Counted from the stretch's first letter, positions 25,830-64,000 are shown. The stretch is 64,000 nt of DNA from Oculina patagonica (GCF_052425735.1 NC_135763.1:37448001-37512000), one strand, 5' to 3'. A program made the numbers and translations. The notes: generated by a model not told the origin, from the letters alone.

Positions 25830-26255
25830 ACAAGGTACTTTTAGCCATGCTGAATCGAATTTTAGAAAAATTTCCAAACAAAAAGCGATGTAACAGTGAA
25901 CAAAAGCTAAGAAAAAAGGGCTCATAAGAGGTAAAAAGATATTACGGGAAAAATTATTATTTTAGTTTTTACACATTAAATAACCCTTTGTGTTCTGGAA
26001 AAGAAAAAAAAAAAAGGAAAAGAGAAACAGTGGCGATATAAACGATCGGTTGATTATATGAGAACCAGGCTTAACTGAAATAGCTGTAAATCACCGACCG
26101 CGTGTTTGCATTCCAATTCGACCCCAAAAAACGTAATAATGTAGTAAATCTACCGTATTCTCCCGCGCCACACGCAAGAGTTCAAAACAGCTCATTATTA
26201 AGTGTACGTGCGTGGCGGTCAAGTTCTTCTTTTACAATTTCGAGTCAATTTGGAC

Positions 26256-26662
26256 TCTGACAAAAGCCCAGGAACTGATGGCCTTCCATCCGAATTCTAC
26301 AAAACCTTTTGGGACGAATTATCTTCTATCTTGATTGACGCCCTGAACTACGGTTACAACACAGGGCAACTCTCGATTACACAGAGACGAGGAATAATTA
26401 AACTTATACCAAAAAAAGATTCAGACCCACATTTCATTAAAAACTGGCGCCCGATAACCCTTCTTATCTGTGATTATAAAATAGCCGCGAAAGCCATCGC
26501 AAATCGATTTAAAGCTGTTATACCAAATCTCATCAACAATGACCAGACTGGCTTCCTAAAAGGACGATTTATAGGAGAAAACATCCGATTGATAGACAAT
26601 ATTATTGAATATGCTTCACAAAAAAACATTCCAGGCTTGTTACTTTTTATAGATTTTGAAAA
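26256..26662 (+). mobile_element. Fragment of a non-LTR retrotransposon reverse transcriptase (L1/Tx1-like)
   Basis: KSPGTDGLPSEFYKTFW, IKLIPKK, NWRPITLL, DYKIAAKAIANR, DQTGFLKGRFIGENI, FIDFEK; truncated at both ends. Confidence 0.9.
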
Positions 26663-27624
26663 AGAGTCTCGCCTACGCTTACCATCAGTAATGACGTGTA
26701 AAAACAAACTTCCTTCGTGAATAAAATTCATTTTAGTTATGAAGGAAGTGCTTATGTACACTGCAATTTAGCCATGAAAGTAAGGCTCCGTACGTGGGTG
26801 GAATGTTTGTTTTCCTGCGAATGCGCACAGATTTCCGTCGGTTGCCTCCGTCTGCGGTCGCAGGAATATTTAAAGTTTACTTGAGTGATTTTAGGTTGGT
26901 CGAGCAATAAAATTGGACGTCTATCGGCTTCGTTCGTTAGGATTTGCCGCTGTTTACAGGTGTCGGGTCTTCGACTTCTAGACGAAAGCAATCATGTTTG
27001 TTAAATTGTCTTTGGTTTATTGAGCTATGATTGCTTAGAAAAACTTTGTTATGTGCCCTGGCCAATCAGAGAAAACACGCTGATTTTTCAGCCAATCAGC
27101 AGCGTAACTAAATCCAACCTTACCTCGACTTGGCTTAGAGGTTAGTGGTTGGGGGGGAATTTTTTTTTTTTTTTAAAAATTTAAAAATTTTTTAAAAAAG
27201 GAAGAGAGGAAAAATCGCCAGTTGTCGTGCGCATGTTGAATTTTCCCGCGTTTTGCACCGGTTGCATGTTTGTAAAAGACTCAAGTTCAGTTTATTTCCG
27301 TAAACTTGAAATTACATTGAAGTTAAAGAAAAAAGAATGTCGCAATAAGAACTTTTTTTATTATTATACAACACGACTGCACGAGAGTAGATAAATTACT
27401 TTTTCGTTGATGTCTTTTATATTTCTCAGAGTTTCTAATTGTCTGAGTCCGCTTGTCTTCAGCTTTGGAGTTGCTAGGCAACAGACAAAGAATGACGACG
27501 ACAATCCGGTTTGGAAACTTCCGGGTTGTTCGATGATAAAACTTTTCGGATATTATCGGAACATTTTCGCATATCATCGGAAACTCTTCGGATAGGGCGC
27601 CAAAGACAGCAGTTGTTTTTCTCA

Positions 27625-33580: not shown

Positions 33581-34513
33581 TCACCCATTAATCTTCCCAC
33601 ATCTTGTAATTTTAGCGAAGGCTCTGCGGTAACGTTGCAGCCGCCATGCAAAAACGAAAGGGTTCATGCTTGAGTTGGCCGCGATTAGGATGTAATTCAA
33701 ATCCTTCGCCCACTGAATAAAAACACAGTTACAACTTCCGCAAAAGATGATCACGTAGATTAGAATCAGCGACGGGAGAAAACAACAAATGAAGAGCGCC
33801 AACATGATCAGAAATGTTTTTGTGATTTTCTTCTCCAGTTTGATGGCTCTCAACTTGGCGTGGTTGTCTCGGTCATTACCACCGTGTAGAGCATCACAAT
33901 TCTTGACTTTATGTTTTAAGGTTTTGAAGACTTTAGCATAAGTGAGGCATAGCACGGTAAATGTAGCCACCACTGCTGTATTGGCGAAAAAGAACTGATA
34001 CTTTAAATAACCGACTTGAAAGTAAAGAAACGGTAATCCAGTGGAGACGATCCATAGAACGAGTGAAACGATGGCAACCCGTTTCGTGCTCAGCCTGATT
34101 CTGTATTTGAGGGGATCTGTGATAGCATTGAATCTATCTACAGTCAATGCAGCCAAGCTTAGCAGCGACGCAGTGGTAGAAATGAAGTATCCAACCCGTC
34201 TAGCATGATCTCGGGGAAGAAAAGTAACGTGATGAGCCGTCAAGGACTCGCGGATATAGAAGTCCACCGACATCGGCAGCGCAAAACATCCCACGATCAA
34301 ATCTGCTGCCGCTAAATTGGCCACCAAGAAGTTAAATGGAGATCGTAGATTGCGATTGGGATCGATAATGACAGCAAGAAGCACAAGGAAGTTTCCTGCG
34401 ACAGCTGTAACCGTGAGAACGGAGCAGAAACTAGCTGAAGTAATGCTCAACGAAGTCGGTGTAGAGACATTTGAACAGTGGTACAGTGAAGACACTGGTA
34501 CAGTTAACGACAT
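33581..34513 (-). CDS. Intronless class A (rhodopsin-like) GPCR, paralog 1, 310 aa
   Basis: Seven hydrophobic segments; GN in TM1, LAAAD in TM2, DRF, W in TM4, CFLP, NSSMNPFVF. Confidence 0.9.
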   Translation of the reverse strand: MSLTVPVSSLYHCSNVSTPTSLSITSASFCSVLTVTAVAGNFLVLLAVIIDPNRNLRSPFNFLVANLAAADLIVGCFALPMSVDFYIRESLTAHHVTFLPRDHARRVGYFISTTASLLSLAALTVDRFNAITDPLKYRIRLSTKRVAIVSLVLWIVSTGLPFLYFQVGYLKYQFFFANTAVVATFTVLCLTYAKVFKTLKHKVKNCDALHGGNDRDNHAKLRAIKLEKKITKTFLIMLALFICCFLPSLILIYVIIFCGSCNCVFIQWAKDLNYILIAANSSMNPFVFAWRLQRYRRAFAKITRCGKING

Positions 34514-37807: not shown

Positions 37808-38827
37808 CTAACTGGGCGTGTTGTCACTAGATGTGTACGTCCCTGATACTGTTGTCACTGTTCCCAAGGAATTCATGGAAAGGTTTAACTGCATAGAAAC
37901 CGAGCGCAGTTTCCGCATAATCTTTCCACATGTTATAATCTTAGCAAAGGCTCTACGATACGGTTCCAAACGCCATGCGAAAACGAAAGGATTCATGCTT
38001 GAGTTGGCCATGATCAAGATGTAATTCAAATCCCTTGCCCAGTGAATAAAAACACAGTTACAACTTCCGCAAAAACTGATCACATAGATAAGAATCAGCG
38101 ACGGGAGAAAACAACTGATGAAGAGCGCCAACATGATCAGAAATGTTTTTGTGATTTTCTTCTCCCATTTGATCGCTCTCATCTTGATGTGATTGTCTCT
38201 ATCGTGGCCATCGTGTAGAGAATCCCAGTGCTTCACTTGATGCTTGAAACTTTTGAAGACTTTAGCATAAGTGAGGCATAACACGGTAAATGTAGCCACA
38301 ACTGCTGTATTGGCGAAGAAGAACTGATACTTCAAATAACCCACTTGAAAGTAAAGAAATGGAAATGCAATGGAGACGATCCACAGTGCAAATGAAACGA
38401 TGGCAGCCCGTTGAGTTGTGAGCTTGATTCTGTATTTCAGTGGATCTGTGATAGCAATGAATCTGTCTACAGTTAATGCAGCCAAGCTCAACAGCGAAGC
38501 CGTTGTAGAAATGAACGCACAAACCCGTCTTGCATGATCGCGTGGAAGAATCACAGGGTGATGGGTCATAGCTTCGCGGATGTAGAAGTCCACCGACATC
38601 GGCAGGGCGAAACATCCCACTATCAAATCTGCTGCCGCTAAATTGGCCACCAAGAAGTTAAATGGAGATCGTAGATTGCGATTGGGATCGATAATGACAG
38701 CAAGAAGCACAAGAAGGTTGCCTGTGACGGCTGTAACCGTGAGAATGGAGCAGAAACTAGCTGAAGTAATGCTCAACGAAGTCGGAGCAGAGATATTCGA
38801 ACACGGATACAAACCAATTAAAGACAT
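37808..38827 (-). CDS. Intronless class A GPCR, paralog 2, 339 aa from the first ATG
   Basis: Close paralog of 33581-34513 with DRF, CFLP, NPFVF and a Ser/Thr-rich tail. The ORF-track start at 38893 is a TTG; ATG 38827 aligns with the paralog's start. Confidence 0.9.
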   Translation of the reverse strand: MSLIGLYPCSNISAPTSLSITSASFCSILTVTAVTGNLLVLLAVIIDPNRNLRSPFNFLVANLAAADLIVGCFALPMSVDFYIREAMTHHPVILPRDHARRVCAFISTTASLLSLAALTVDRFIAITDPLKYRIKLTTQRAAIVSFALWIVSIAFPFLYFQVGYLKYQFFFANTAVVATFTVLCLTYAKVFKSFKHQVKHWDSLHDGHDRDNHIKMRAIKWEKKITKTFLIMLALFISCFLPSLILIYVISFCGSCNCVFIHWARDLNYILIMANSSMNPFVFAWRLEPYRRAFAKIITCGKIMRKLRSVSMQLNLSMNSLGTVTTVSGTYTSSDNTPS

Positions 38828-41800
38828 AGTAGCTCCGTCTGATCTATGGCAAAAAATTTCGTCTAACCTCAGTAGATTTCTTTTTATAGCCAAACGATCT
38901 GAGATGTGGATCGCTTAAGACCATTTACCGGTGTTGTAGGAGATGTTTTGATGTACTCAGCTGTCATGCTAAGGCGGAAATGAAATTTACGCTTTGTAAT
39001 TGAATTAGCCCTCAAAGTAAACTGAAAGTCACGTCATCTTTGAGTGGGGGCGTGGCCTGCTTATGCGTAAAATTAAGCCGAAAAGATATGAGAGGAATGG
39101 ACTGGACTTGATAAAAACGGCGTATTTTGGATTTCTTTTTTTCGTTTTATATCGAAAATGTTTTGAAGACCAAACTGATCAATTATGTATAGCCATGTAA
39201 TTACAATCGTCAAGCCCCTGTAGATAATGCATTTTGTCACAAATACAAGTACATAAGGTTCATTAGCCCCCACACTTGAAAAGTGAAAGGTCAACCTACA
39301 GTAGCTTGATCGTCATTCAAAGCTTTCCAGTTGAATTACGTACAGCTTTCTAGAACATATTACTCCAATTTCTAGAAACCTTCAATATGCTGACAGGATA
39401 AGCTACAGCTAAAACAATAAGCCACGCAATAAATGTAGCAAAAAATGACACAAATAGTATCCAGAATTTGCATGTTATAGCGTCATATCCTGCGGGGACA
39501 AGGTCAATTTCCTCGCTGCGTCGAGCCTTGACGGACGTGGGAAATTAGAAGTTTGCAAGCAGGATGTAAGTTTTAGCAGGGAAACAGAAATAACAAATGC
39601 TAATTGGACTGAGTGATGGTACAATTCAGGGATTAATCGAGCGAGTTATTTCAAAATTAGCCGAGCCAATTAAGTTACGAGTGTGATTGCTGCCTGAATT
39701 GGTTGACAAAATATCCAAATTGCGTAATCGTAGTAATTACAAAATTCGAGAAAGGGGAATTCTGTGATAACCTGTTTTAAGAAAACCATTCAGTGATATA
39801 TTTGATTAGTTTTACTGACAGAAAAGAAACAGCAGAGAAAACTCATTGAAGTGCACATGATGCGCGAATGACGTAATTAGTCATGCTGTAAACCTCTAAT
39901 TACGTAAGACAGCTATGTAATGAAAATAAAATTGACATTACTATGACAACGAGTTTGGTTGACGGCCAATACAGCAATAGAACAAATTGATTCAAAATCT
40001 GTAAAAGAGCTTAAAGCGGAAAACAAAATTAGAAAAATAAACAAACTTTAAGCACCTGCTGGGAGCTTTAACGGGAGTTGAAACAAAAATAACGAAACAA
40101 CAAAATGTATGCAAAGCTAGTTAATTTCTGAGACAGTTTGCTTAAACAAGGCCGCAAAAAATATCAAAAATAGAAATTTTATGCTAAGCTTAGTCTGAAA
40201 ACCTGAACGAGAATTAACACAAAAATAGCGAAAGCAACGCAACAGATGCTTGATCTTAAATAGCTTGCTCGAACATGAAAACATAAATGTAACGAAAGGA
40301 AAGCTGGAAACAGCGATTAAAGCCAAGGTCGTATCTGTAACTGCCGTGGGCATTGAAGTTCGAAATAGCAATTTACACTAACAGTTTTCTAACTAAGAAA
40401 AAGTCGAAAGCGACTGAATGCAGTACTGGACTTAAGTCACAAAACCATTGTTTACTTCTTAAGCTTTTTTCGAGCGAAAATGTTTTATGATACATTTCTC
40501 CCAGATGAAAGAGAACACAACGCGAGGGAAGTTAAACTATTGCGTTTTATTTTAATTTTCACCTCTACTTAGAGTAGATTGCTTTTTACATTTACATCAT
40601 CTTCTGTAAGTAACCTAGAGGAACTTAATATTAAACGGAATTAAATAACTTTGATTTAGCGTAAAGTTTACAAGGAGAACTGCGGGCATTTTTTAAGGCT
40701 CAACTTTGGTTGTTGTTGTGAGCGCGAGCGGTAGTTCCTCTTCTAATATTTAATGAGCGCGCAATTTTTGCAAACGTAACCTGTTCCAGGCGTTCGCCTG
40801 TAAACAGGCCATCGCCAAAGACGTTGCCAAGTAACATGACGTATTTTTTGACTTAAGCTGGCGAGTAGATTTTCGGAGTGGTCGCGAATGGTTGGTCTGA
40901 AATCTGATTGGATAAGAACAATCGGAAATTTTCCGGGTATTTGTTGCGAATGATACTCATTCCATCTATCGATGTGAAAAACGCCCTGTCAGTTACATGT
41001 ACTAAGCTCTAAATAAATATCACTTCTAGCTACCGTAATGATTCGTTTAGCGCCCGGGGCGCTTTTTTTTTTGCGCCTCGGGGGGGGCTTTGGGGGCTTG
41101 AGGGGGTTTTTATTTTTTTAAAAAAAAAAAAATATAAAAAAAAAAATTTAAAATATAAAAAAAATATTTGGGGGGGGGGGAAGGGGGGGATATTCTAGAC
41201 AAGAAATATACGCTTATTTGTATTTAGTGAAATATGGAATACCTAACATTTTAAATATACTAGATCTGTTAGCAAGCTACATCTGTGTGTAAAGATAACT
41301 TAAAGTTAGACCGTGGTTTTAAAAAATTAAAATTTAGAGTTTTAAATTTATTTCCGATAGTACATCTATCTTGAAAAAAAGACCCCGATTAAATGATTCC
41401 AAGATTTTTGTTCGTTACACCGGATTCTGATCGTAACCTGTGCCACTCACAAAGGACACAGACAATCCAGTGAACCAATCAAAACTCGAAGCAAACACAT
41501 GTATCCAGCACGAAGCGCGGGAAAAAGTGCGCAAGCGATTCATGATTGGTTTTGGTGTCACTTTTGATTGGTCGACAAAGTGGCGGGGATTTTTAATCCA
41601 GTCACTAAGCGTAGTAAAACAAAATCAAAGCAAATGCGAATTACTTTCGACACTCAAGTGAAACCGCTCTATATTGGAATTTTTTTTTTTACTTTTGAAA
41701 CATAGTCGAACCTCCCTAAGTGGACACTCTAGGGACCAGAAAGTACATGATTGTGTTGCATAGGTAAGACCTTGACAGTGTCTACTTACGTGAGGTGCAC

Positions 41801-42251: not shown

Positions 42252-45200
42252 TTATCCAACAGGCATCGCGTGCTCCGGGAAAAGAACCGGAGTCGCGACG
42301 ACACCAGCCCCAGTCTCGAACTTCCAAATAACGGATCCATCGTCACCGTGCAAAGCGTACACAAACTTATCAGAGCTAGCGGCGTACACCACATTATCAC
42401 GTGATACTGCTACCGATGCCACGACGTAGTCACGTGTTGTTGGTGACCATATATGGGAGCCGTCGGTTTGTTTGAGCGCCAAGATGCGGCCATCGCCTGA
42501 TCCAACAAAAACCTGCAATGTGAAAATACAAATTAAAGCGATGAGTACTTGAAACAAGAATAAGAGGTACAGGTCTGGTCTGTACTTCAGAAAGAAAACA
42601 ATGGGTGCATACTAAACTTGCAAGTCCAGCTAGTTCACATAAAGAAATAATTTTACCGATAACGAGTTACTTTGAATAGTCAGTCNNNNNNNNNNNNNNN
42701 NNNNNNNNNNNNNNNNNNNNNNNNNNNNNNNNNNNNNNNNNNNNNNNNNNNNNNNNNNNNNNNNNNNNNNNNNNNNNNNNNNNNNNNNNNNNNNNNNNNN
42801 NNNNNNNNNNNNNNNNNNNNNNNNNNNNNNNNNNNNNNNNNNNNNNNNNNNNNNNNNNNNNNNNNNNNNNNNNNNNNNNNNNNNNNNCGAGACAATCCTT
42901 ACTCACCCTCCCATCCTCAGTTATGACAGGTGACGACACCACCTCCCCACCAGTGTTCACCGTCCACTTGACTTTTCCCGCCAAAGGTCCATCTATGGTG
43001 TTCACAGCAATCAGCTGATCCTTGATCAAGCCAACATACAGTGTGCCATCCAACTTACTGACCACTGGGGACGACTCCACTTCAGACCCTGTGTCATGTG
43101 ACCAGTACAGCTTGCCTGATTCACGGTCTAGAGCGTAGATATTATGGTCTAGAGTCGCAAAGAACACGGTTTGACCGCCGGGCATGAGAGCAGGCGAGCC
43201 GTAAACGCTTCCGGCCCTGTCAAATTTCCAAGCAATTTCACCCGAGCTGGCTTTCAGAGCGAATACATGAGGCGTGTCCTGCGAGTCTGATGCGTTCGAT
43301 TTATCCGAGGTACAGCCGGTGAAGAGAAGCCCTTTCTCGTTGTCCACAGCAACAGCACCCCAGATAGGACAATGAAGGTCTGTTTTCCACAGAACGGACC
43401 CAGTTTTGCCATTCAAAGCATACACGTGCTTATCCTGCGACCCAACATAGACTGTCCCATCAAGACCCACTCTTGGGCTCGCCACAACGGCTCCTTCGGT
43501 CTTCAGTGTCCAGACTACGGATCCATTAGCTGCACCAAGGGCATAGACATTGCCATCATTGGAACCAAAATAAACGATCTCTTCGTCTTGGCTAAGAGCT
43601 GCAGATGACATGATCTTGCCAAGAGTTCGGTATTTCCAGATAACAGTCCCGCTGGCCGCGCTAAGTGCGTACATGTTGTGGTCTTCGGAGCCGACGAAAA
43701 CAAGTGGTTCGACTGACGAATCACCGCTGAGGTCTTCGTCATCTAACAAAAAAGAAAAAAGTGTCATTGAATGAATGTTATAGTAATTATCCTTTCAATT
43801 GAAAAGTTTCTTTTCCCTGTAAATGCAGTGACGTTAATCAATAATCAAATAAAGAATGACAGACTTTCATCCGGCGTTTGTCGTTTGTTGAGGTCCAAGT
43901 AATTTTCCTCGTTGGGAAGAGTAAGAAAACTCGAACAGTGTTTGATTTTCATTCACCAATCGCAAAACAGGACAAGCACTCGTAAAGAAAACAAAGGTTT
44001 CCCCGTCAGCTTGACGTCATAAATTTTATGTCATGTTGCGAAGCAACCGGTTGTAAGGAGACCGCGGGCTCAGGTACTTGTTTCCTCGGTAACAAAGGTA
44101 TATTGAACAATTCTGATATACACGTGAAGGTCAACTCACAGCACAATCCACAGCTTTCTTGACAGTTGATCAGCATCCAGTCAGGGTTTGATCTACATTC
44201 ACCAGAGGACGCCCACTGCTGACAGTTTGAATGTTTATCTGAGCAACCTAATTATCATTAACGAGGTCAAGTTAAGAATGGAGCTGGGATGCATTTCAGA
44301 GGCTATTTGAATAGCTAGATTTTTTTGATGACGTTACGCAAATTTAACTGTGCATTTGCTTTAAGGTTTTGAATTTTTTAGCTCTGTAATTTGGATAAAA
44401 AAAACTTATACACGTGCGCTTGTTACTGGTTACATTATTTTCCGCGCTTTTCATTAGTTCCGGTATTTTCCCGCGCTTGTCACAAATTACATGTTTTTCG
44501 CGCTTGCGACTAGTTAAGCCTGGATCTCATATGGTCGCCCGATCGTTTCTATCGCTTCGATCGTTTGCAAATACTGAGACGATCGTAGGCGATCGAAGCG
44601 ATTGGAAGCGATCGGGGGTTCTCATGTGATCGTCCCGATCGCCTTTATGGGCGAAGACCTACGAAAAACAATCATTTCAGCCCTAGATCCAACACAATGG
44701 CGGCCTTCAATGAAAGGACAAAACTCGTGGCCTCCTATCTTCTTAGTTATTGCAACTTACAGCAAAGGAGGGAGAGAGAAGCTAGAAGGATAGAACACGG
44801 GCGATCCAAGCGATCGTAATCGCCCCAATCGCCGCAGACGTTAGCGATCGTCTGTGTAATGATCTCATATACAATCGCCCCGATCGCTAAAAAACGTTTT
44901 GAAGTGACAGAGCCGACAGAAACGATCGGGGCGATTATATGAGAACCAGGCTTAACATGTTTCAGTTCTTGCGCTTGACAATAAATAAATGTTCCCACGT
45001 GCTTCGCCGCCCTCGCCATAAGTTATGTGTTGTCCCGCTCTTGTCACTAGAAACTAGTTACAAGTTTGACTGCGCTTGCCAATGGCTCAGTGTTTCCCCG
45101 CGCTTGTCAAAGGTTAAGTTTTGTTTTCCGCACTTGTCACTAGTTTATACGTGGTAACGCTTTGCACGAAAACACGCGATTCCTTGGTTTATAGTTACCC

Positions 45201-48200
45201 CTTTGGCGGGCCCTTTGGAAACTATATGTCAACTATAAACGTCGAAAAGGCTGTAGCCATAATTACCTAATCCTTTCTCCAGCTTCTGTTCCAAAGGATG
45301 GAATTCATAATCAGTGATGTTATTGAAATACTCGATTTCATCTTCATTAAGAGAAAAGTCCAAGGCTCGGAAATTCAAGTAAATATTTCTTGGATTCTTT
45401 GATCGTGGTATGACCGTCACGTTAACGTGAATGGCCCATCGTAGAACAACTTGTGAAGGAACAAACTCGTAATGGCTGGCAATCTCCAAGATCAGCGACG
45501 AACTTAGAACGGGATTTTTTTGCAAACCGTGGAAGTAAACCCATTGAAGGCCTGCAAAGAAAAGATCGCTACATCAGTTAAGGATTAAATTAACTTGAGT
45601 TGGCCTCACTACGTATAATTTTCGATGGCCTTTGTTGAAACTCAACGTTAGTAACGGACTCTTTTCAAGAACGCCCTTAACCTTGAAATACGTTTTCAGT
45701 GGTTTATCGAAGATCTTTATCAGACTCAAAGTGGAAACTTTATTTTTGTACAATGGTAAGAAGTAGTATTGTAAGTAGTGTATGTCTTGTTTTGTAACTA
45801 GTTATCCTCGTGGTGCAACAAAAAAAAGACGTTTTGCAAAACATTCGGAATAAAGCAGTTTCTTATTTTAATTTTTACCATGATTCTACCCCGTAACATT
45901 TACTTCTTAGGAAGCTAATTTTAGTTTGCCAAATAATGAATTAACGCTTTTTGGTCATAAAATCATAAGATACTAGTAAAAAATTTAAATACCGTATTTA
46001 TTCGATTAAGCGCCCTGGACCTTGAGGGTGGGCGCTTATTTGAGGTGGGCGCTTATTCGAGGCTGGGCGCTTTATTAAATTCTCTCCATTTTTAGCAAGT
46101 AGTACATTTATTTTGCAAGAAAACAATGTATAATAACTAAACCTGAAGAAGCTGAATTTTAACTGTTCATTGAAAGTTTCAGTAAAAAACTAAACAAACT
46201 CGGTCTTTGGGGTCGTCTATTAGTAGTAAGTAGTCAATTTCACTCTCAACTTCAATAATAATGAGTACTCCTCTTGTGCACTTCAGGGGTGGGGGGGGGG
46301 GGGGGGTTGGGCGCTTATTCGAGGTTGGGCGCTTAATCGAATAAATACGGTAATTTTTACGTACATTTGTATATTAAACTTACTGGAGCAGAAGTTTGAA
46401 CAAAGCCCCCCCCCCCCCCCCCCCCGTTCCTTTAAAACTGATACGTTCTTCTACTAAACAAAACATTGAATGTTGTGATGTTTTTAGCTCAAACTGGACG
46501 ACTATTACATAAGTTTACACAACAATAAAACAACTTACCAAGAGTTGAATATCCAATGTATCTAATGTTGTGCTCTTGGCAGAACTTCCTAACTGGACGA
46601 TCTTGATGAAACGGGTCAAACCAGTTTTGAACTGCAGACACTGGCACTGTAGCAAGTTGAACCAGTTCCTCCAGGTCTTGAGTGTCAAAGTTGCTGACGC
46701 CCAGACTGCGTAGCTTCCCTTTCTTTTGCATTTCCTCCATGGCCTTCCAGCTCTCTTGCCAAGTTCCCTTGGGCTCTCCTACAAAAGACAAAAAATTAAG
46801 AGTTTGTTGTTTGCAGGAAAACTTTGGTTTTTGGAAAGACGTTATGAAACAAACGTTTTGCTTAATATTCTAGGCCAGAATATTTAAAGTATGATTAAAC
46901 TAATCCACGATTAGCATGAATTTGGCTCTCAGTTTTTTTTAACTTTTCAGTGAGGTTTTCTGTTAATACAAGATAAATTGAACCTCAATCAACTTTAATC
47001 CTGGGTAAGTGTTAATTGGCTTTCGAATGACCCAGCCCTGGATGGAGAGTGAGGAACTCAAGGGTGTGCTCTAATTCTTAGAATAATTGCAGGGTGCCCG
47101 AAGGCTCTTCTGTAAGGAATCTTGGGTGTCCAGCCCATAAAAGCTTTCATGGCGGGTAGTACCTCACCCCACTAATTACTCCTGGTCTGTCATGCTACCC
47201 AAAGTGGATCTTACACTATAAGGTTTACACCAGTAAATTACAAAAGATAAAACTTGCCTTCTTCACATGTGAGAAGGAAGTCATCGCATTGCTGGGTGTG
47301 TATAAGAAACAAATCAATGTAGTCTGTTTTCAGAGATTGCAGAGACATCTCAATGGCCACCAAAGTTGTATCATATCCTAAATATTTGGGATGCAGTTTG
47401 GTCAGGATGAATATATCTGACCGAGGGATTCCACTCTGTTCAATGGCTTCAGCAACTAAAGGTTCTGAGCCAGGATATCCTTGGGCTGTGTCAATCAACC
47501 TATTGAGAGATTAAAGAATTCCTGTCATTGGATCAGAAACTTGCTCAATGTAGTCACACTTTGCAAACACTTAGCTACTACAGAGGGTCCATTACAAGGG
47601 GTTGTTCAGTCTGCAGACCATTTTTTTTTTCCTAGACTGCAAATTTCTTTTATTTTCTCCTGAAGACCAAGTCCGCCAAATATTTCTTAACTGTAGACTG
47701 CCAGATAATAAAGAAAGTGCATGCAGGGTGACGCCCAAAAAATGCCTTAAACTGCCAGAGTATAATATACCCTTAATATAGTCACCCTGTTATTACAGAC
47801 AGGAGTTTAAGTCCCAGAGAATAAGAATTACTGAAAATAACTTTCGCTACTTCAGACTTTCTCTACAGGCGCCAAATTGTAGTCTGGAAGGTGTCCATTA
47901 TAGTGGGAGTTGACTGTATATACTGACGGCAGTATAAACTACTACTAAATGAACAATGTACGATATGTTTTTATATTACTGGCATGCAGGGTATAGCAGA
48001 TATTAGAAGGTTTAATTTTTTCCTCTTTAAGCAGGAAAATGATATTTTGACTGATGGCTGTACTCACTTAAGGATACTGGAATGGTAAATTCAAGACTGC
48101 TAGATGATGAGACTGATATCTTTTCTGTGAACTAGCCTGGGACCTTCTTTAGCCTTGCAAAAAAAATCAAGACTCTGAGAATGCATCCCAGGCAAGTTTG

Positions 48201-51200
48201 AGATGACAAGACCCCTGAAACTTCGCTGACATTTTGCGAGACGCACATATCTTAAAGGACCATTCACCAACCCTTCACTTACAAGAAAGTTTAACTAACA
48301 ACCACATTCAATATGACTGTAATCACCTGTAGCCGACTTCAAGTGCTGCTTTAACAGCAGTAGTTGTGTTCTCCATCAGAGTAGCTGTACCAAAGCCCAT
48401 AACTGGCACTAAAGAGGGCAAAAAGAGAAAGCACACTAGTGAATGGGTCAATTATCAAGCAAGTACTTATATCAGCCATTTTGTTTACTTACTGGTAAAT
48501 TTGAATTGGACATGTTGCAGTTAATTTTTGATCTTAGTTAATTTTTTATTTCAACCTTTTTTCTAACAAGTTTTTAATATACTAATATTAAGTTGAAAAA
48601 GGAAAACACCTTCCCTCCCTTAATGTCTCATATCCCCCTCCCTACTATCTGCTATTATCCACATCCCCTAAGTACTATCATCTAATTTTCTTTTCTTTTT
48701 ACTAACCTGCACTGGATTTGAACTCTCAACCCCTTATCCACCTTGCCACGTAGGAAACGTTGGGTGAACCACTATTTTTTCAAAAAAAAAAATAGTATGT
48801 GACTCCAACCCATACCCTAACCCTATTATTTAACTATAAAATTATAAAAAATCAACTAGTTAGAAAATAACTAACTAGTAAAGTAAGAAATTAACTGAGA
48901 TAAAAAATTAACTGCAGCAGATACCCTAAACCATGGGGTCAATAACACGCACCTGACTGACTCACTCTGTGCCCAAACAGGTTTTTATCGATTACTATCA
49001 ATGACTTACTTGTGTATCCGCTTGCAAGTTTGACATCCGCTGGTCTCTCATTTCGTTTTGGAATCCTTAGGGGTCCACTGCTAGGATCGCTAGCATTGAT
49101 TTTTAGAATAGCGTTTAAGGCATGCTTCTCCTCTTGGCACTGAATCCTGTCTGGTTCATCTTGGACAAGCTTGTCGAACATCTCTGTTACCTACAAAATT
49201 AATGAAAATAATAAAATATGTTATGTACAATTCAAATCAAAATTTTACTTAACTGTCAAAAATTCTCTCAACTGTGAAAATTGTAAAAGAGCAACAGCTA
49301 TACCATAAAATTCCGGTCATAAGTCCCCCCCCCCCCCTTGCTTATAAGCCTCCCTGGTTATAGGCCCATCTACCTGGAAACAAACAAATACGTCCGGTTT
49401 TGCCCCCTCCCCCAGATATAGGCATCCCTCTGCTGGATGACAGTATTGAACAGGGCTAAATGGTGCTTTATTATGACTTTTTAACTTAAAAACCTTTTTC
49501 GATCAACAATACCATGGCTTTTTTCGAAACGTTTTTTATTCCGCTAATAATCCTCACCCGGATATAAGCCCCTCAGTTTATAAGATCACCCAAAACCCCT
49601 TACAAAATTGTAGAAGCCCAGGGCTTATAACCGGAATTTTACGTTATTGTATTGAGTGTACAAGTTACCTTTGTCACATCTGTGTCTTCAGAAATCCCTG
49701 CCTCAAGAAACTGCTTCTCAAAGTTAAACATTGCAAACCAGACATTGAGAGCAATGTTAGGAGCGTCATGTGATCGGACAATGTGCCACCAATATTGTGG
49801 GATATACAACATGTCACCTGTCAATCAGTTAGGTGGACTATGTTAGTTACCATCTGATGGACTGAATTTACCGTAACTTAACTCTCTAATTAAAAATACT
49901 AAAAAGTAAGCATTTTTAATTGTTCAAATAAATAATATTGCTTTAAGAAGACTGACTCTAAATCATGATTTCAATAGTTGGTCATGTTTTTTAAAGGCAA
50001 AGGTAAATGTATGGTGGAGGGGAACAGTCGGGGTGGGCTGGGGTGTGGCAGGATCCCCTTCGTAGAGCTGAGGGGCAGGAATTCTGTGGGAGGTGGGATT
50101 CCCAAGGAATATAAGGTCAGGTAAGTGGGAAGTTCACACTTCCCTGCCCCCCTCCCCCACAATGTTGTTTAATGGTATAACCACTAAAGCCACTTCCCTT
50201 CACCCACCTAATGATTATAGATCATTTTATATTAATAGTGAATTACGGAAATACGCTAGTATGAGTTAATTTCAAATATTAATAAAAATGTATGTGTTTT
50301 TGTAAGCTTGCTGGATTTACCTGTTATGAAAAGCTACTTAGCAGCTATTTTTGTTTAAACCACTCACCTTTATTCAAGGTTACTTCATAATAAGGCACAT
50401 CTGCTAGTTTTGGATAAGTCTCTAAGTCTAACTTTTCTGGATCAATTGACAACACTCCTGGGGCAATGGTAAACTGATCAGCATACAGTTCTTTACCGTA
50501 CGTGCTATTAATCAAGTAGACAGTCTTTGTTCCTGAGATGACAGTTATAATATTTTCCAATCCATCATGATGAAAGGCAGAATTAGCATCACCGCTATTA
50601 AATAACAGATTAAGGCTATCGATTGAAGAAGATATCTCATGGCAGTTTAAAACTGATGGTAAAATAATATCATTTAGCATAGGACTGTTTGGCGGAAAAG
50701 CAGAGTCCAGGTAAACATCTTCAGATTTATATATTTTCAGAAATTCTCCAAAAGAAAGCGGCTTCCTGACAGGGTGTTCATTCTTAAATTTCTTCCGATA
50801 TTCCACAGTAAAAATGTTAGACCCAAAATTTGACGCTAAATATGATTCATTTTGCCAGAGTTGTACAGCGGGCCAGTGGTTAGCGCCGTTCCTGATAACC
50901 ACAGGTTTCCTTTTGTGAATGTAGTTGTGGTAGAAGTCAGCGCCACTTGGAGCATACTTTAAACTTGCGATTTCACCTTCTGATGGCCTGTGTTCGCCGA
51001 AACGCTTCAGGTGGCCTGAACAGAAAATAGAATGGTCTGTGAGTTGATTACCAAAGTCAAACCATTCTTAGTAATTTAAATTGTTTTTAAAAAATGTATT
51101 GATATGTTAAATTATATAATTAATTACTATATTAATTTAGAGAAGAGGCCACATCAGCTCTAGCTGGTTTTCATGGGGGTCCTCTGTCCAGGTTGAATTG

Positions 51201-52933
51201 GAATTTGGAAATGTTGGTTTTACAGGAGAAAGGAAACTGGAGTACCCTGAGAAGAACCCTTAAAGGAAGGCAAGAATCGACAACAAACTCAACCCCCTTT
51301 AATGGCACCAGACTGGAATCAAACCTGAGCCACATTGGTGGGAGGTGAGCACTCTCGCCACTGCACCATCCCCACTCCCCAAGGCAGAGATGTGGATGGG
51401 TTGAGAGGAAAACTAAAGTATGGTGCAAACTAAACTCCAGTTAATTATTAATTTAAATTCAGTTTCTACCCTACCTTTCCTCTCAACCCATCTACCCCTC
51501 TGCTTTTAAATAAATTGACTGTAAAAACTGAAATAATTAAAAAAAAATTCTAAAATTTCAACCAATGAAAAATTGACACCTCACCCATTCATATTTATGT
51601 CTTGAACATAATAAATTCATAAAGAAATAAAAACTCAGTTTTTGTTGTCTTTTTGTGAGAGGCATGAAGGCAAATTGCATTCTGGATTATTCAGTGTTCT
51701 TGGGTGCAGTACCTCTCTCCTGGGAAGGGGCACCCTGCGAGCAGAGCCTCTTTTTACTTCCCTGCGGTTGAGATTTGAGAAGCAGAAAGAAGCTCTGCTT
51801 AAATCGTGTCATTTCTTTGAAGTCACCGCAGCCCCAAAGTTTGGGCTGGTCAGCCCAGATTAAACTGGTTTTTGTTGCGCAGGCATTATTTTTTTGGAAA
51901 AACTGATGGCCAACACGGAACCCACAGTATGCTCTCGAGAGCACTTGAGCTGACGATTGCTCTCGCCATCTACTACCGTTTGTGTGCGCGTGCAGCTTCT
52001 GGATCATTGAAGATCTGTTCTTTTTTTGCAAACCAAGAAGAAATTTCACGATTAAAATCACACATCTCTACCATAAAGTCACTAATACGACCTCAAGCAG
52101 TGCTTGACGTGTTTTTGTTCAAGGAAAGCAGATGCTTTTTGAAGAAAAGAACTTGTAAAACAAACACTTTGTTCACACTGTCGTGTACGATCCGACACGC
52201 CATTCTGTGCGCACATGCTAAGATTAAGTGGTCCTCGCGCAAGCTCAACAAAGATTTGACACGATTCTTGCAGAGCCCTTTCTTCTCAAGTATATCAGTG
52301 GAAAAGCTGGAAAGGGCTCTGCTTGCAGGGTGGGGAAGGGGGGAGGGTACTTGGAAAGTTTGGGTGGGAACCTGAGGGTGGGGGTGCTTTGCCAACCCAT
52401 CCACGTACCCACAAACCTTTTCTTTTCAGTGCTTCAAAAATATTGAATTTATCAGACTTAATTTCTTGGCTGTACTTATAGAAGCTTAATTCTTAAACAC
52501 CAAAAAAGTGGTGACCTCATTCGCTCAAAAAGGGGGTACTGTTAGCATTTATTTTAGAAGTTTAGCCGGCCCTTTTTGGTGGTGATTTAGAATTTACCAA
52601 AGCTTTAATAATTAAAGCGGAAATATTTCGTGTTAAAAGGCGTGTTAATTTTACGACTTAAAAAAACTTGTCTACAACCTTTGAAAACTTTTTAGCACAT
52701 CTATCGCTCGGTAGAGCGTTGAGCAGTAAGCTCAAATTAATTTGTAAAGCCACTATCAAAATAGCTGATTCATTAAGTTCAGAATACCTTTTTCCACGAT
52801 CCCGACACAGCCATCTTTGTCACAAAAGCCAGGAGATGAACCTTCAGTTAAGTACCACAGTGAAACAAAAGACAACAGAATGAAACAAGCGCCCGCCGGG
52901 AAAATATTTTCCCCTGTGAGCAATCAACAACAT
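42252..52933 (-). CDS. ~1058-aa secretory-pathway fusion protein: signal peptide, JmjC/cupin 2OG-Fe(II) oxygenase, aldo-keto reductase, ShKT, 8-bladed PQQ-type beta-propeller
   Basis: Exons 52933-52788 (needs a 1-nt correction), 51015-50368, 49817-49669, 49190-49010, 48408-48327, 47499-47258, 46778-46539, 45551-45267, 44247-44140, 43742-42907, 42512-42252. All ten junctions are phase-compatible. JmjC: FHHDGLEN, GDMLYIPQYWWHIV. AKR: MPVMGFGT, IDTAQGY, LTKL, DLFLIH, LGVSNF, VIPRS. Confidence 0.8.
42686..42887. other. Assembly gap (N run) in the last intron of the fusion gene
   Basis: About 200 N characters. Confidence 0.99.
44140..44247 (-). other. ShKT domain exon (phase 1-1) of the fusion gene
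   Basis: CSDKHSNCQQWASSGECRSNPDWMLINCQESCGLC has six Cys in ShK spacing. Flanked by a taattag acceptor and gtgagt donor; too short for the ORF track. Confidence 0.9.
44514..44955. mobile_element. Harbinger-like MITE with cgatcg subrepeats, inserted in a degenerate ttcccgcgcttg minisatellite (44410-45155)
   Basis: ttaagcctggatctcatat ... atatgagaaccaggcttaa. Confidence 0.7.
45992..46350. mobile_element. TA-flanked MITE with CCGTATTT TIR
   Basis: TA|ccgtatttattcgattaagcgccc ... gggcgcttaatcgaataaatacgg|TA. Confidence 0.8.
48513..48919. mobile_element. MITE with long TGTTGCAGTTAATT TIR, copy 1
   Basis: Closely similar to 58559-58996 and in the same orientation. Confidence 0.75.
49303..49644. 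mobile_element. TA-flanked MITE with tataagccc subrepeats
   Basis: ccataaaattccggtcataag ... cttataaccggaattttacg. Confidence 0.65.
51150..51375 (-). mobile_element. tRNA-derived SINE with a V-domain-like body
   Basis: Minus strand reads ggtgcagtggcgagagtgctcacctcccaccaatgtgg...tgagtttgttg...gggtactccagtttcc. Confidence 0.6.
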
Positions 52934-62381: not shown

Positions 62382-64000
62382 TCATTTCTTTGGTTCAGCG
62401 TCCTCTTCACTTGTTGGTACTAATTTATAATGTTCTTCACTGTCGTCTTTACCTTCTCTAAACCTTACAAACAAATGAGTGGACAAAAACAGAACCAAAA
62501 CGACAAGTGACGTCAGAGAGTAAATGAAATAAGTCCTGGCAACACCGACCCAGTTGATCAGAAGACCGCTGATCACTATGCCTGAGCCGACTCCGAGTCC
62601 CCAGTGACATCCACCCACAAAACCTGCAGTCAAACAAACATGAAGTTAGGGTCAGTTTACGTGGAAGGAGGGTAACCCTCCTAGAAGGATTACCCTTTTA
62701 GGAGGGTTAACCTCATCTATTGTTTTCCCCGCTTTCGTTAACATGCGAGGTAGGGTTTAAGCCATGTAAAACCTCGAGGTAGGTTTACCCTCCTAGGAGG
62801 GTCAAGTTCAGGACGATCAGATTACTGTCACATTCCCGCTAACTGTAAACATGGCTTCGCACAGTTATAAACCTGGAGAATCATTTCGGAGAACTTTGCT
62901 TGCAAAGCGGCAAATCCAAGCCAGGACGATGCAGAAAGTCAGAACGACAGTCAGTGCAATAGTTTGGCTGCTGGAATAGAATGTTCACGATCTTCTGCTG
63001 ATGTTCAATTAATAGGCGAAAGTCTTGATCAATACGAAGGTTCGGCAGACGGAGCCGTACTTGATCAGCCACGCAGTAAACTGAACAAAACGGAAAAGGA
63101 AAGCGGCTAATCGATCAGAGTTTTCGTCAAAAAAGTCGAAGAAGTGGACATGGGTGCCCGAGGCCGTTGAACTGCTTCAAAAATGTATCAACGAGTACAA
63201 GACACAGTGCGAATTTAACGGCTTCAGGTTTCCGTGGATTTTTTGGTGGAGTTTGCCCTAAGGATAACCCTACATGTAAAGGAGGGCTATCTTTTGACCT
63301 TTCTAGGAGGGTTTCCCTCCCTCCATGTAAGATCGCTGTTCAACTACTCGAACGCCTGAGAACAAGCTAAGATGTTGTCTTTATTTACCATCAATTTCTC
63401 AAAACTAACATTACAAGGAACCTACGGCAATCATGTAAGGAGAGTTAATATTCTGAATATTCACTTACCTTGGGTAGCTGAGTAGAAGCCAACTCGCAAG
63501 GACACAGTAGCACCAAACACCACACAGGCAGACCAGCTTACACCATACAATATTCCCTGGGCACTGAACAGTGCCACACCCAGCCAGGGGTTCAGGACAA
63601 ATGCCAGGCCCATGTACACCGCTCCATATAATGCTAAGCATATAGCTATGGTGCACACTAGTCCGAACTTGTTCATGATGACTCCTGATAAGACATATCC
63701 TAGTAAGGCTATAGTGTAGCGTATACCAGACGCAATGCCTAACATGTAGGGCTCAGCTCCGAGATCATCCAGATACCACAAACCAAAGTACTCGTGTAAG
63801 CCGATAAGGATCCCCAAATAACAAGCCACAATGATGAATATCGCGTTATGAAATTTCAGAAGCTCTTTGACTAATGGCAATAAATTAACATCTGTTGATG
63901 TCTCCTGATCTGGGTAGGTAACTTCCATGAAGGCAACAGTGAATATAGCAAGTGCCATGAATCCAGCAAAAAAATAAAACGAAATGAAATAGTTCTTTAC
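62382..64000 (-). CDS. 3' part of an MFSD6-like major facilitator superfamily transporter
   Basis: Exons >64000-63469 and 62623-62382, joined in phase 1. Many TM helices; WYLDDLGA and SATQG|FVGGCHWGLGVGSG resemble MFSD6 motifs. Confidence 0.8.
62646..63335. mobile_element. MITE in the last intron of the MFS gene
   Basis: ttacgtggaaggagggtaaccctcctagaagg ... cctttctaggagggtttccctccctccatgtaa inverted ends. Confidence 0.6.

Follow-up and report, generated by a model that had tools for sequence, protein, structure and literature searches.

The coral Oculina patagonica encodes a protein in which a JmjC-type oxygenase domain, an aldo-keto reductase (AKR), a ShK (ShKT) module and a propeller follow one another in a single chain. 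The gene spans ~10.7 kb and 11 exons on the minus strand, at 42252-52933 of a 64,000-nucleotide stretch of the genome (GCF_052425735.1 NC_135763.1:37448001-37512000), which we call the window and in whose coordinates nucleotide positions are given. We hold with high confidence that the locus is one protein-coding gene with the architecture JmjC-AKR-ShK-propeller. The explanation that we favor as a whole, to which we assign a probability of about 0.55, is that this one gene specifies a secretory-pathway JmjC hydroxylase and a reductase dependent on reduced nicotinamide adenine dinucleotide phosphate (NADPH), both equipped with docking modules. What is new here is the recognition of the fusion and not its existence, as sequences of this kind are already in databases and the JmjC module was classified in 2010.

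Gene structure and transcript evidence

Exon borders were placed at splice consensus, giving exons 2-11 AG/GT borders with one GC donor (47257); the intron concerned, intron 6, is of the GC-AG type (donor AAG/GCAAGT at 47257-47256) and is borne out by a spliced contig described below. Joined together, exons 2-11 (51015-42252, minus strand) form a single open frame of 1010 codons that ends at TAA 42254-42252, and its translation agrees at every residue with positions 25-1034 of the GenBank entry "hypothetical protein ACROYT_G023866 [Oculina patagonica]" (P0296 in our set); the gene model is thus already publicly annotated. An initial annotation of this DNA had eleven exons joining in phase into ~1058 residues. 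That description is right for exons 2-11 but not for exon 1, which is out of phase, and the figure of ~1058 (48 + 1010) is reached only when one base of exon 1 is ignored.

Contigs from four public runs (X1, X13, X18 and X20) were aligned on 43831-49830, an interval that leaves exon 1 and the joint between exons 10 and 11 uncovered. Only X1 and X13 yield spliced contigs, while those of X18 and X20 run through introns, for which reason we take these two runs to be DNA. A 605-nucleotide contig of X1 (record 5) joins 49664-49819 to 49010-49185, that is, exon 3 to exon 4, and extends at both ends; a second (record 4) joins 47257-47387 to 46652-46777 (exons 6 and 7). From X13, a 527-nucleotide contig (record 12) carries 49010-49188, then 84 nucleotides matching the size of exon 5, then 47329-47497 in exon 6. 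The passage from AKR to ShK is captured in an 890-nucleotide contig of X1 (record 1), which joins 45265-45540 (exon 8) directly to 44136-44245 (exon 9) and continues for 504 nucleotides past the ShK exon with no match to 305 nucleotides of the adjoining intron; the stop at 45229 is therefore spliced out and the ShK exon spliced onward. Separate transcripts ending at 45229 had been named beforehand as the outcome that would overturn a single gene, and this contig removes that stop. Small offsets between the contig joins and our exon borders reflect alignment ambiguity (shared GTAAC and GT). The joint of exons 7 and 8 is not seen among the contigs aligned on this interval, and that of ShK and propeller is visible in them only as the 504-nucleotide continuation. 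The protein clusters closest to exon 2 (P0001-P0003, P0151-P0164) were discarded as transcript evidence, being genomic open reading frames (ORFs) that read into introns.

These contigs bear directly on a different view of the locus, in which two or three neighboring genes (JmjC; AKR; ShK-propeller) have been mis-joined through a coincidence of phase. The DNA does offer natural end points for such genes: reading through the exon 3 donor leads to a stop at 49641-49639, an in-frame ATG lies at 49181, and the exon 8 donor (TTAG/GTAATT) lies 35 nucleotides ahead of an alternative in-frame stop at 45231-45229. The earlier argument that a single junction exon excludes mis-joining gave exact borders for that exon (49190-49010) but is insufficient by itself, given this ATG and the stop after exon 3. 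We nevertheless regard mis-joining as already refuted and extremely improbable, since spliced contigs cross both junctions, cDNA-length contigs of relatives encode all four domains, a paralogue has AKR and propeller within one exon, and the architecture recurs across phyla. Among the relatives, P0297 (1071 residues) is the sole gene on a 3424-nucleotide Logan contig (L011), with Cupin_8, AKR, ShK and propeller all matched by Pfam, and P0298 and P0299 (1060 residues, contigs of 3.5-3.8 kb) likewise carry four domains; in the O. patagonica paralogue (LOC144644870, P0182, on C2), the AKR C-terminus and six propeller blades share one 417-codon ORF. Exon 4 truly holds both the end of the JmjC domain and the first AKR strand, because its cysteine C308 is invariant in 27 of 27 homologues, including those that have no AKR. 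The spliced contigs and this cysteine settle the JmjC-AKR single-gene question, and together with the relatives' contigs they uphold the claim of one gene and one mRNA with the domains in the order stated.

A run of N within intron 10 starts 19 bases past the exon 10 donor and ends 173 bases short of the exon 11 acceptor. The intron has a donor AGG/GTGAGT at 42907/42906 and an acceptor cag/GTTTTTG at 42513/42512, and the flanking exons read in phase across the gap (...VITEDGR/VFVGSGDGR...). An exon hidden within the gap was considered and rejected: over the exon 10-11 junction, the alignments of the Actinia orthologue and of three coral orthologues derived from cDNA have zero residues missing, and the blade count stays regular across it, six before and two after, so that nothing is left unaccounted for. 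Judged from these homologues, and not from reads of this genome, the gap conceals intron and not exon sequence.

Exon 1 is where the assembled copy breaks frame. Translation from ATG 52933 gives MLLIAHRGKYFPGGRLFHSVVFCFTVVLN before TGA at 52849-52847 ends it. The frame that splices into exon 2 (phase 1, ...ACFILLSFVSLWYLTEGSSPGFCDKDGCVGIVEK/G) is open only past TGA 52926-52924 and has no ATG; the hydrophobic segment lies in this second frame, shifted by one base relative to ATG 52933. In a close relative, two genomic contigs (L009, L010) are one A shorter at ~52881 and stay open all the way between this ATG and the donor, and the cDNA-derived orthologues P0297-P0299 are open from the equivalent methionine straight through (for example, P0297 ...MLWIDHGRKYFPAGGSILLLSFVSLWYL...). 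The extra A is either a one-base assembly error or a haplotype frameshift; a second exon 1 copy that might tell error from allele was sought in the assembly, which holds a single copy only. One could read this copy as a null allele or young pseudogene, in which the inserted base abolishes the start along with the signal peptide, and the transcripts observed derive from intact alleles or from relatives. Such a reading draws on the TGA that the extra A, relative to L009/L010, puts into the ATG frame, on the GenBank model, which begins downstream at 'MWYL', and on the single exon copy in the genome. We consider it improbable: the other 1010 codons show no damage, all catalytic residues and splice sites being preserved, the aligned contigs differ from the window at 0 to ~6% of positions, which makes expression of this or a near-identical allele likely, and a single-base indel is a common assembly error.

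Three intronic stretches of the gene, in introns 8, 7 and 3 (44431-45030, 45831-46430 and 49231-49830), have a summed contig depth hundreds to thousands of times that of the flanking exons in all four runs, and are high-copy interspersed repeats; the one in intron 8 contains a reiterated 'gacaagcgcgg' motif.

Table 1. Exons of the JmjC-AKR-ShK-propeller gene and the assembly gap, in window coordinates.
Feature	Position	Strand	Content
Exon 1	52788..52933	-	Start ATG 52933 and N-terminal hydrophobic signal/anchor segment (...ILLSFVSLWYLTEG SSPGFCDKDGC...)
Exon 2	50368..51015	-	GHLKRFG (GHxxxhG) motif and bulk of the JmjC/Cupin_8 double-stranded beta-helix
Exon 3	49669..49817	-	Last part of the JmjC core, with the distal iron ligand (H252, YWWHIV)
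Exon 4 (junction exon)	49010..49190	-	JmjC C-terminal helix with C308, flexible linker, first AKR strand VKLASGYT
Exon 5	48327..48408	-	N-terminal part of the AKR (MPVMGFGTA...)
Exon 6	47258..47499	-	AKR tetrad D381, Y386, K412, H445 and family-specific cysteine pair C449/C456
Exon 7	46539..46778	-	Middle part of the AKR, GVSNF and VQNW cofactor motifs
Exon 8	45267..45551	-	C-terminal part of the AKR, cofactor motif IPRSKNPRNI...N
Exon 9	44140..44247	-	Whole six-cysteine ShK/ShKT domain (CSDKHSNCQQWASSGECRSNPDWMLINCQESCGLC)
Exon 10	42907..43742	-	Propeller blades 1-6 (8-bladed BamB/ACSF4-type)
Exon 11	42252..42512	-	Blades 7-8 and stop TAA 42254-42252; C-terminus ...HAMPVG, without KDEL
Assembly gap (N)	42686..42887		Within intron 10, outside the coding sequence

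Domain identities and catalytic residues

Pfam searches of single-exon ORFs place Cupin_8/JmjC at 50345-50902 and 49639-49824, Aldo_ket_red at 47238-47498, 46489-46791 and 45229-45525, and a PQQ_2/Beta-prop_ACSF4 propeller at 42888-43767 and 42252-42557. On P0296, whose residue numbering we use throughout, Cupin_8 covers residues 51-272 (1.3e-39, 137 bits, cutoff 27.4) and Aldo_ket_red residues 356-617 (9.6e-49). Nearly all of the 27 homologues that we compared retain both the JmjC and the AKR catalytic residue sets.

The closest solved structure to the JmjC domain is that of human JMJD5 (E 3e-21), followed by JMJD7, FIH and TYW5. The iron triad H173/D175/H252 aligns to JMJD5 H321/D323/H400 and is intact, as had been claimed, and the 2-oxoglutarate (2OG)-binding residues N179 and K188, kept in 25 and 24 of the 27 homologues, respectively, align to N327 and K336. 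In JMJD5, an arginyl C-3 hydroxylase also named KDM8, E238 and Y243 hold the guanidino group of the substrate arginine (PMC5862942). Exon 2 encodes their equivalents, E96 and F101, along with C149, the HxD pair (H173, D175), N179 and K188; across the homologue alignment, position 96 is mostly E or D, with Q or H in some members, and position 101 is nearly always aromatic. The two proteins thus share iron ligands, 2OG-binding Asn and Lys and substrate-site residues, but the solved JMJD5 constructs (PDB 6f4m and others) are stand-alone JmjC domains of ~235-270 residues, and the alignment to the coral domain is a distant one. The core of the domain is modeled by AlphaFold2 (AF2) at a predicted local distance difference test score (pLDDT) of ~85-95. 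To our knowledge, JMJD5 is nuclear or cytosolic, with no signal peptide, disulfides or fused domains reported.

The start of exon 2 carries a GHxxxhG motif, GHLKRFG, in which G25, H26 and G31 are near-invariant among homologues. C149, like C308, is invariant in all 27 sequences, and the two probably form a disulfide bond. Because of this motif and this cysteine pair, we assign the JmjC module, by its sequence features, to the 'Secreted JMD5-like family' of JOR/JmjC dioxygenases that Iyer, Abhiman, de Souza and Aravind defined in animals in 2010 (NAR 38:5261; PMC2938197, Table 1). These authors described conserved disulfide cysteines and the N-terminal GHxxxhG, reported losses of the family from vertebrates, arthropods and nematodes, and predicted proteins of the cell surface to be its hydroxylation substrates; they also found fusions almost unknown in the clade and stated that the family 'emerged only in metazoans' (PMC2938197). 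Their text contains neither 'aldo' nor 'reductase', uses 'propeller' solely for kelch, and describes no fusion to an AKR or a PQQ-type propeller (PMC2938197). The coral module resembles the family in its GHxxxhG and cysteines, in the acidic and aromatic residues ahead of the core, in the signal peptides or anchors of its orthologues and in its occurrence in non-vertebrate, non-ecdysozoan animals, and differs in being fused to AKR, ShK and propeller. A choanoflagellate member (P0034, below) further predates the metazoan origin that was proposed.

The AKR tetrad, reported as intact in the initial annotation, is indeed so: D381/Y386/K412/H445 aligns to the tetrad of PDB 4f40 and is kept in all AKR-bearing homologues except that of Lingula. 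The NAD(P)H motifs GVSNF, VQNW and IPRSKNPRNIYLN are present, with the K of IPKS changed to R. The best solved match is the Leishmania prostaglandin F synthase (PGFS)/arabinose dehydrogenase 4f40 (E 2e-42), and further matches are to Trypanosoma PGF synthase, YvgN and 2,5-diketogluconate reductases (E 1e-42 to 1e-34), which by sequence assigns the domain to the AKR5-like (PGF-synthase/2,5-diketogluconate-reductase) type. It has in common with PGF2alpha synthase/D-arabinose dehydrogenase, YvgN and the diketogluconate reductases (4f40, 4fzi, 3f7j, 1vp5) the D-Y-K-H tetrad and the SNF, Q and IP(K/R)S...R...N motifs. Those enzymes stand alone, at ~275-320 residues, whereas the coral AKR is an internal domain of a predicted secretory protein and has an added cysteine pair, C449/C456, which is family-specific and invariant and lies after the catalytic His. 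The trypanosomatid and bacterial enzymes just named are soluble and cytosolic.

The ShKT module that had been claimed is present as a complete six-cysteine exon. Residues 634-669 match PF01549 over profile positions 1-37 of 37 (40.5 bits, cutoff 20.9; 4e-10), and the pattern C-x-C...C...C-x3-C-x2-C can be read directly from the DNA; its pLDDT of 47-62 is low and comes from a shallow alignment. Among the 27 homologues, the six cysteines are confined to the hexacoral clade, and by this distribution the ShK domain is a hexacoral addition to the family.

The C-terminal propeller had been called 'PQQ-type' (for pyrroloquinoline quinone). A propeller is there, at residues ~680-1028, with matches to Beta-prop_ACSF4 (PF13570; 1.2e-69, 235.7 bits, cutoff 133) and PQQ_2 (1e-41), but 'PQQ-type' is a Pfam label only, and the scaffold is of the 8-bladed BamB/ACSF4 type. 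The translation of exons 10 and 11 contains eight YAL...G...W repeats of ~42 residues per blade, with eight matched stretches to Cake9, and the blades are modeled at a pLDDT of ~90. The nearest proteins by sequence are the designed 'Cake' proteins, 3hxj and BamB, which are non-catalytic. A true PQQ quinoprotein dehydrogenase was rejected, given these BamB-like relatives and a fragmentary match to PF01011, which covers only positions 56-146 of 595 of that profile. Eight regular blades are equally found in BamB and other 'PQQ-like' propellers and in the C-terminal propeller of animal AASDH/ACSF4 (PF13360, PF13570; 3hxj, 2yh3; Cake); the coral propeller differs from these in being attached to two enzymes.

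An AF2 model of the whole protein, built from a 24-sequence alignment, has a mean pLDDT of 84 and a predicted template modeling score (pTM) of 0.43. Confidence exceeds 90 in most 10-residue blocks of JmjC, AKR and propeller, and the linkers at 320-336, 619-636 and 663-679 are unstructured or of low confidence. The model suggests domains arranged as beads on a string and not as a rigid assembly; at this pTM it is uninformative on how the active sites face each other.

Distribution, cellular setting and proposed function

The architecture occurs in several versions. JmjC, AKR and propeller are combined in Nematostella (LOC5518642), Actinia, Stylophora, Montipora and Oculina (the paralogue), in the sponge Sycon (also in the EukProt set), in the hemichordate Glandiceps, in two Branchiostoma species and in cDNA-length contigs of the JGI/IMG and Logan collections. 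JmjC and AKR alone are found in the choanoflagellate Stephanoeca, the sponge Oscarella, the brachiopod Lingula, octocorals (Paramuricea, Dendronephthya) and Hydra, and JmjC and propeller without AKR in Hydra and Hydractinia. The four-domain form with ShK is found in Actinia (LOC116291382), Oculina and three coral transcript clusters, and in a tree of JmjC domains these four-domain members group in a clade distinct from the other cnidarian paralogue. The Stephanoeca diplocostata protein (P0034, 793 residues) is a transcriptome ORF with Cupin_8 and AKR, and since a choanoflagellate carries both, the JmjC-AKR fusion, on this sequence evidence, predates animals. Among the homologues collected here, none comes from vertebrates, arthropods or nematodes.

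All named database entries are 'uncharacterized' or bear automatic names ('Prostaglandin F synthase', 'Probable reductase'). The earlier statement that no described protein has this architecture holds for the literature that we searched, where we found no mention of the fusion, its pre-animal depth or its proposed lumenal setting. It does not hold for databases, as ACROYT_G023866 is this very gene and RefSeq and EukProt hold the same or three-domain forms, nor for the JmjC module, already classified under the secreted family.

Three related loci deserve mention in their own right. The paralogue locus of O. patagonica (G000:C2:44903474-44913900; L002, L003, L012, L013) contains a tandem pair of paralogous JmjC first exons, with open frames of 358 and 354 residues and 2.7 kb apart, followed by AKR exons and then a single exon with the AKR end and six propeller blades; the locus comprises either two genes or a single gene that uses alternative first exons. 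A Branchiostoma lanceolatum protein (P0014, 1380 residues, with a KDEL end) has a duplicated AKR, two Aldo_ket_red stretches lying between JmjC and propeller. Two green-algal proteins, from Scenedesmus ('XYL1', P0199, 719 residues) and Chlamydomonas eustigma (P0316, 737 residues), combine AKR and ShK independently, which suggests a secretory location for them.

Several features of the family point to a secretory setting, as the initial annotation had proposed. Classic signal peptides are found in the Glandiceps, octocoral and Hydractinia homologues, type II-like anchors after a short cytosolic N-terminus in those of Oscarella and Sycon and in P0185, and KDEL C-termini in members from Branchiostoma lanceolatum, Paramuricea and Dendronephthya. 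Because of these N- and C-termini, the invariant cysteine pairs, the ShK knot and eight N-x-S/T sequons in the Oculina protein, we place the catalytic domains, as a prediction, in the lumen of the endoplasmic reticulum (ER) or secretory pathway. Collagen hydroxylases find O2, Fe(II), 2OG and ascorbate in the ER lumen, where H6PD supplies NADPH, as established from H6PD/11beta-HSD1. With these supplied, both enzymes could work there.

We propose that the protein enters the secretory pathway and would work in the ER or a post-ER lumen, where the JmjC domain would hydroxylate a side chain in a protein (most likely a basic one, like JMJD5), and the AKR domain would draw on NADPH to reduce a carbonyl in the same pathway. 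Docking of clients, without catalysis, would fall to the propeller, joined in hexacorals by ShK. That JmjC and AKR share a pathway is suggested by the conservation of their fusion over long evolution; for both being active lumenal enzymes in one pathway, we put the chances a little short of even. Several observations weigh against this proposal. The Hydra protein P0308 and the EukProt protein P0304 have lost the JmjC triad and keep the AKR, the Lingula protein (P0033) has lost the AKR Tyr and His and keeps JmjC, and hydrozoan JmjC-propeller proteins have no AKR. Several members of the family have Q or H in place of the guanidino-binding Glu. The Oculina protein has no KDEL and may leave the ER to travel further along the pathway, and NADPH is scarce outside cells. 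Lastly, with exon 1 out of frame, the copy as assembled has no translatable signal peptide (assembly error or null allele), and the RNA nature of runs X1 and X13 is deduced from missing introns. As some homologues have one dead domain or no AKR, the two activities are not obligatorily coupled, which tells against a strict form of the coupling of oxidation to carbonyl reduction or epimerization that the initial annotation had suggested.

A stricter scheme would couple the two domains in a two-step catalysis on one substrate: JmjC would oxidize a C-H next to a heteroatom, or oxidize twice, to give an aldehyde, ketone or iminium that the AKR reduces at once. The net result would be epimerization, or conversion of an amine or ether to an alcohol, in a lumenal protein side chain or small molecule. 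In its favor, a choanoflagellate (Stephanoeca, P0034), sponges, cnidarians and amphioxus all retain the fusion, and most members have both catalytic sets intact. Oxidation followed by an AKR reportedly has precedents in STORR and in T6ODM followed by codeinone reductase. STORR, the CYP82Y2-AKR fusion of opium poppy, is an analogy for an oxidase fused to an AKR, and PLOD3/LH3, other PLODs, ASPH, P4H-TM and the vertebrate ER-lumenal JMJD8 are analogies for lumenal 2OG oxygenases with accessory domains or anchors. STORR- and PLOD-type systems have different oxidase folds (P450, classical 2OG-Fe), and we know of none that pairs JmjC with AKR. We consider strict coupling unlikely: lineages exist with only one live domain or without AKR, and no fixed interdomain interface is predicted in the AF2 model. 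JMJD7 and FIH, known relatives of this JmjC clade, make stable alcohols, which also speaks against a carbonyl intermediate. JMJD5, another such relative, likewise yields a stable alcohol and not a carbonyl (PMC5862942).

In another possible arrangement, the AKR would support or regulate the oxygenase, either by regenerating an ascorbate-like reductant with NADPH or by acting in the manner of Kv-beta, sensing NADPH and thereby setting the activity of the hydroxylase. The nearest solved AKRs, D-arabinose dehydrogenase/PGFS and 2,5-diketo-D-gluconate reductases, and the JGI label 'diketogulonate reductase-like' given to relatives are consistent with such a role, and 2OG oxygenases do need a reductant after uncoupled turnover. 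The fully conserved tetrad fits a working reductase but is not specific to a supporting role, we found no link between this AKR and ascorbate chemistry, and the hydrozoan JmjC-propeller proteins manage without an AKR; we judge this arrangement quite improbable.

The most far-reaching reading of the family is one that we put forward only tentatively and hold to be doubtful. In it, an ancient, pre-metazoan lumenal family would use JmjC and the NADPH-dependent AKR jointly for a novel two-step redox modification of secretory proteins or of a lumenal metabolite, for example a hydroxylation/oxidation-reduction or an epimerization, with the propeller selecting the client, and the pathway would have been lost in vertebrates, arthropods and nematodes. 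If true, this loss would explain why such a two-step lumenal pathway escaped discovery. JmjC-only hydroxylases form a small group, with work on their substrates still in progress, and apart from the poorly understood JMJD8, we know of none shown to act inside the secretory pathway; to these the family would add a JmjC enzyme of the lumen that is permanently linked to a carbonyl reductase. It would also point to protein or metabolite chemistry hidden from standard model organisms, which could not reveal it since vertebrates, arthropods and nematodes have, according to Iyer et al. (2010), lost the family. Cnidarians offer tractable genes, namely Nematostella LOC5518642 and the JmjC-propeller genes of Hydractinia and Hydra. 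The case further illustrates that a striking architecture may already sit in RefSeq as an 'uncharacterized protein'.

Other features of the window

The fusion gene is adjoined on its downstream side, on the same strand, by two intronless ORFs of 310 and 361 residues (33581-34513 and 37808-38893, both on the minus strand) that encode rhodopsin-family G-protein-coupled receptors (7tm_1, E ~1e-30 each). Two further minus-strand ORFs, at 16065-17981 and 18365-19351, encode 638 and 328 residues with no Pfam match at E<=0.001; open frames of this length are unusual for an intron-bearing genome. The window also contains a reverse-transcriptase fragment at 26202-26720 on the plus strand (RVT_1, 2e-10) and an exon of a major facilitator superfamily (MFS) transporter at 63461-63958 on the minus strand (MFS_1_like, 1.5e-13).

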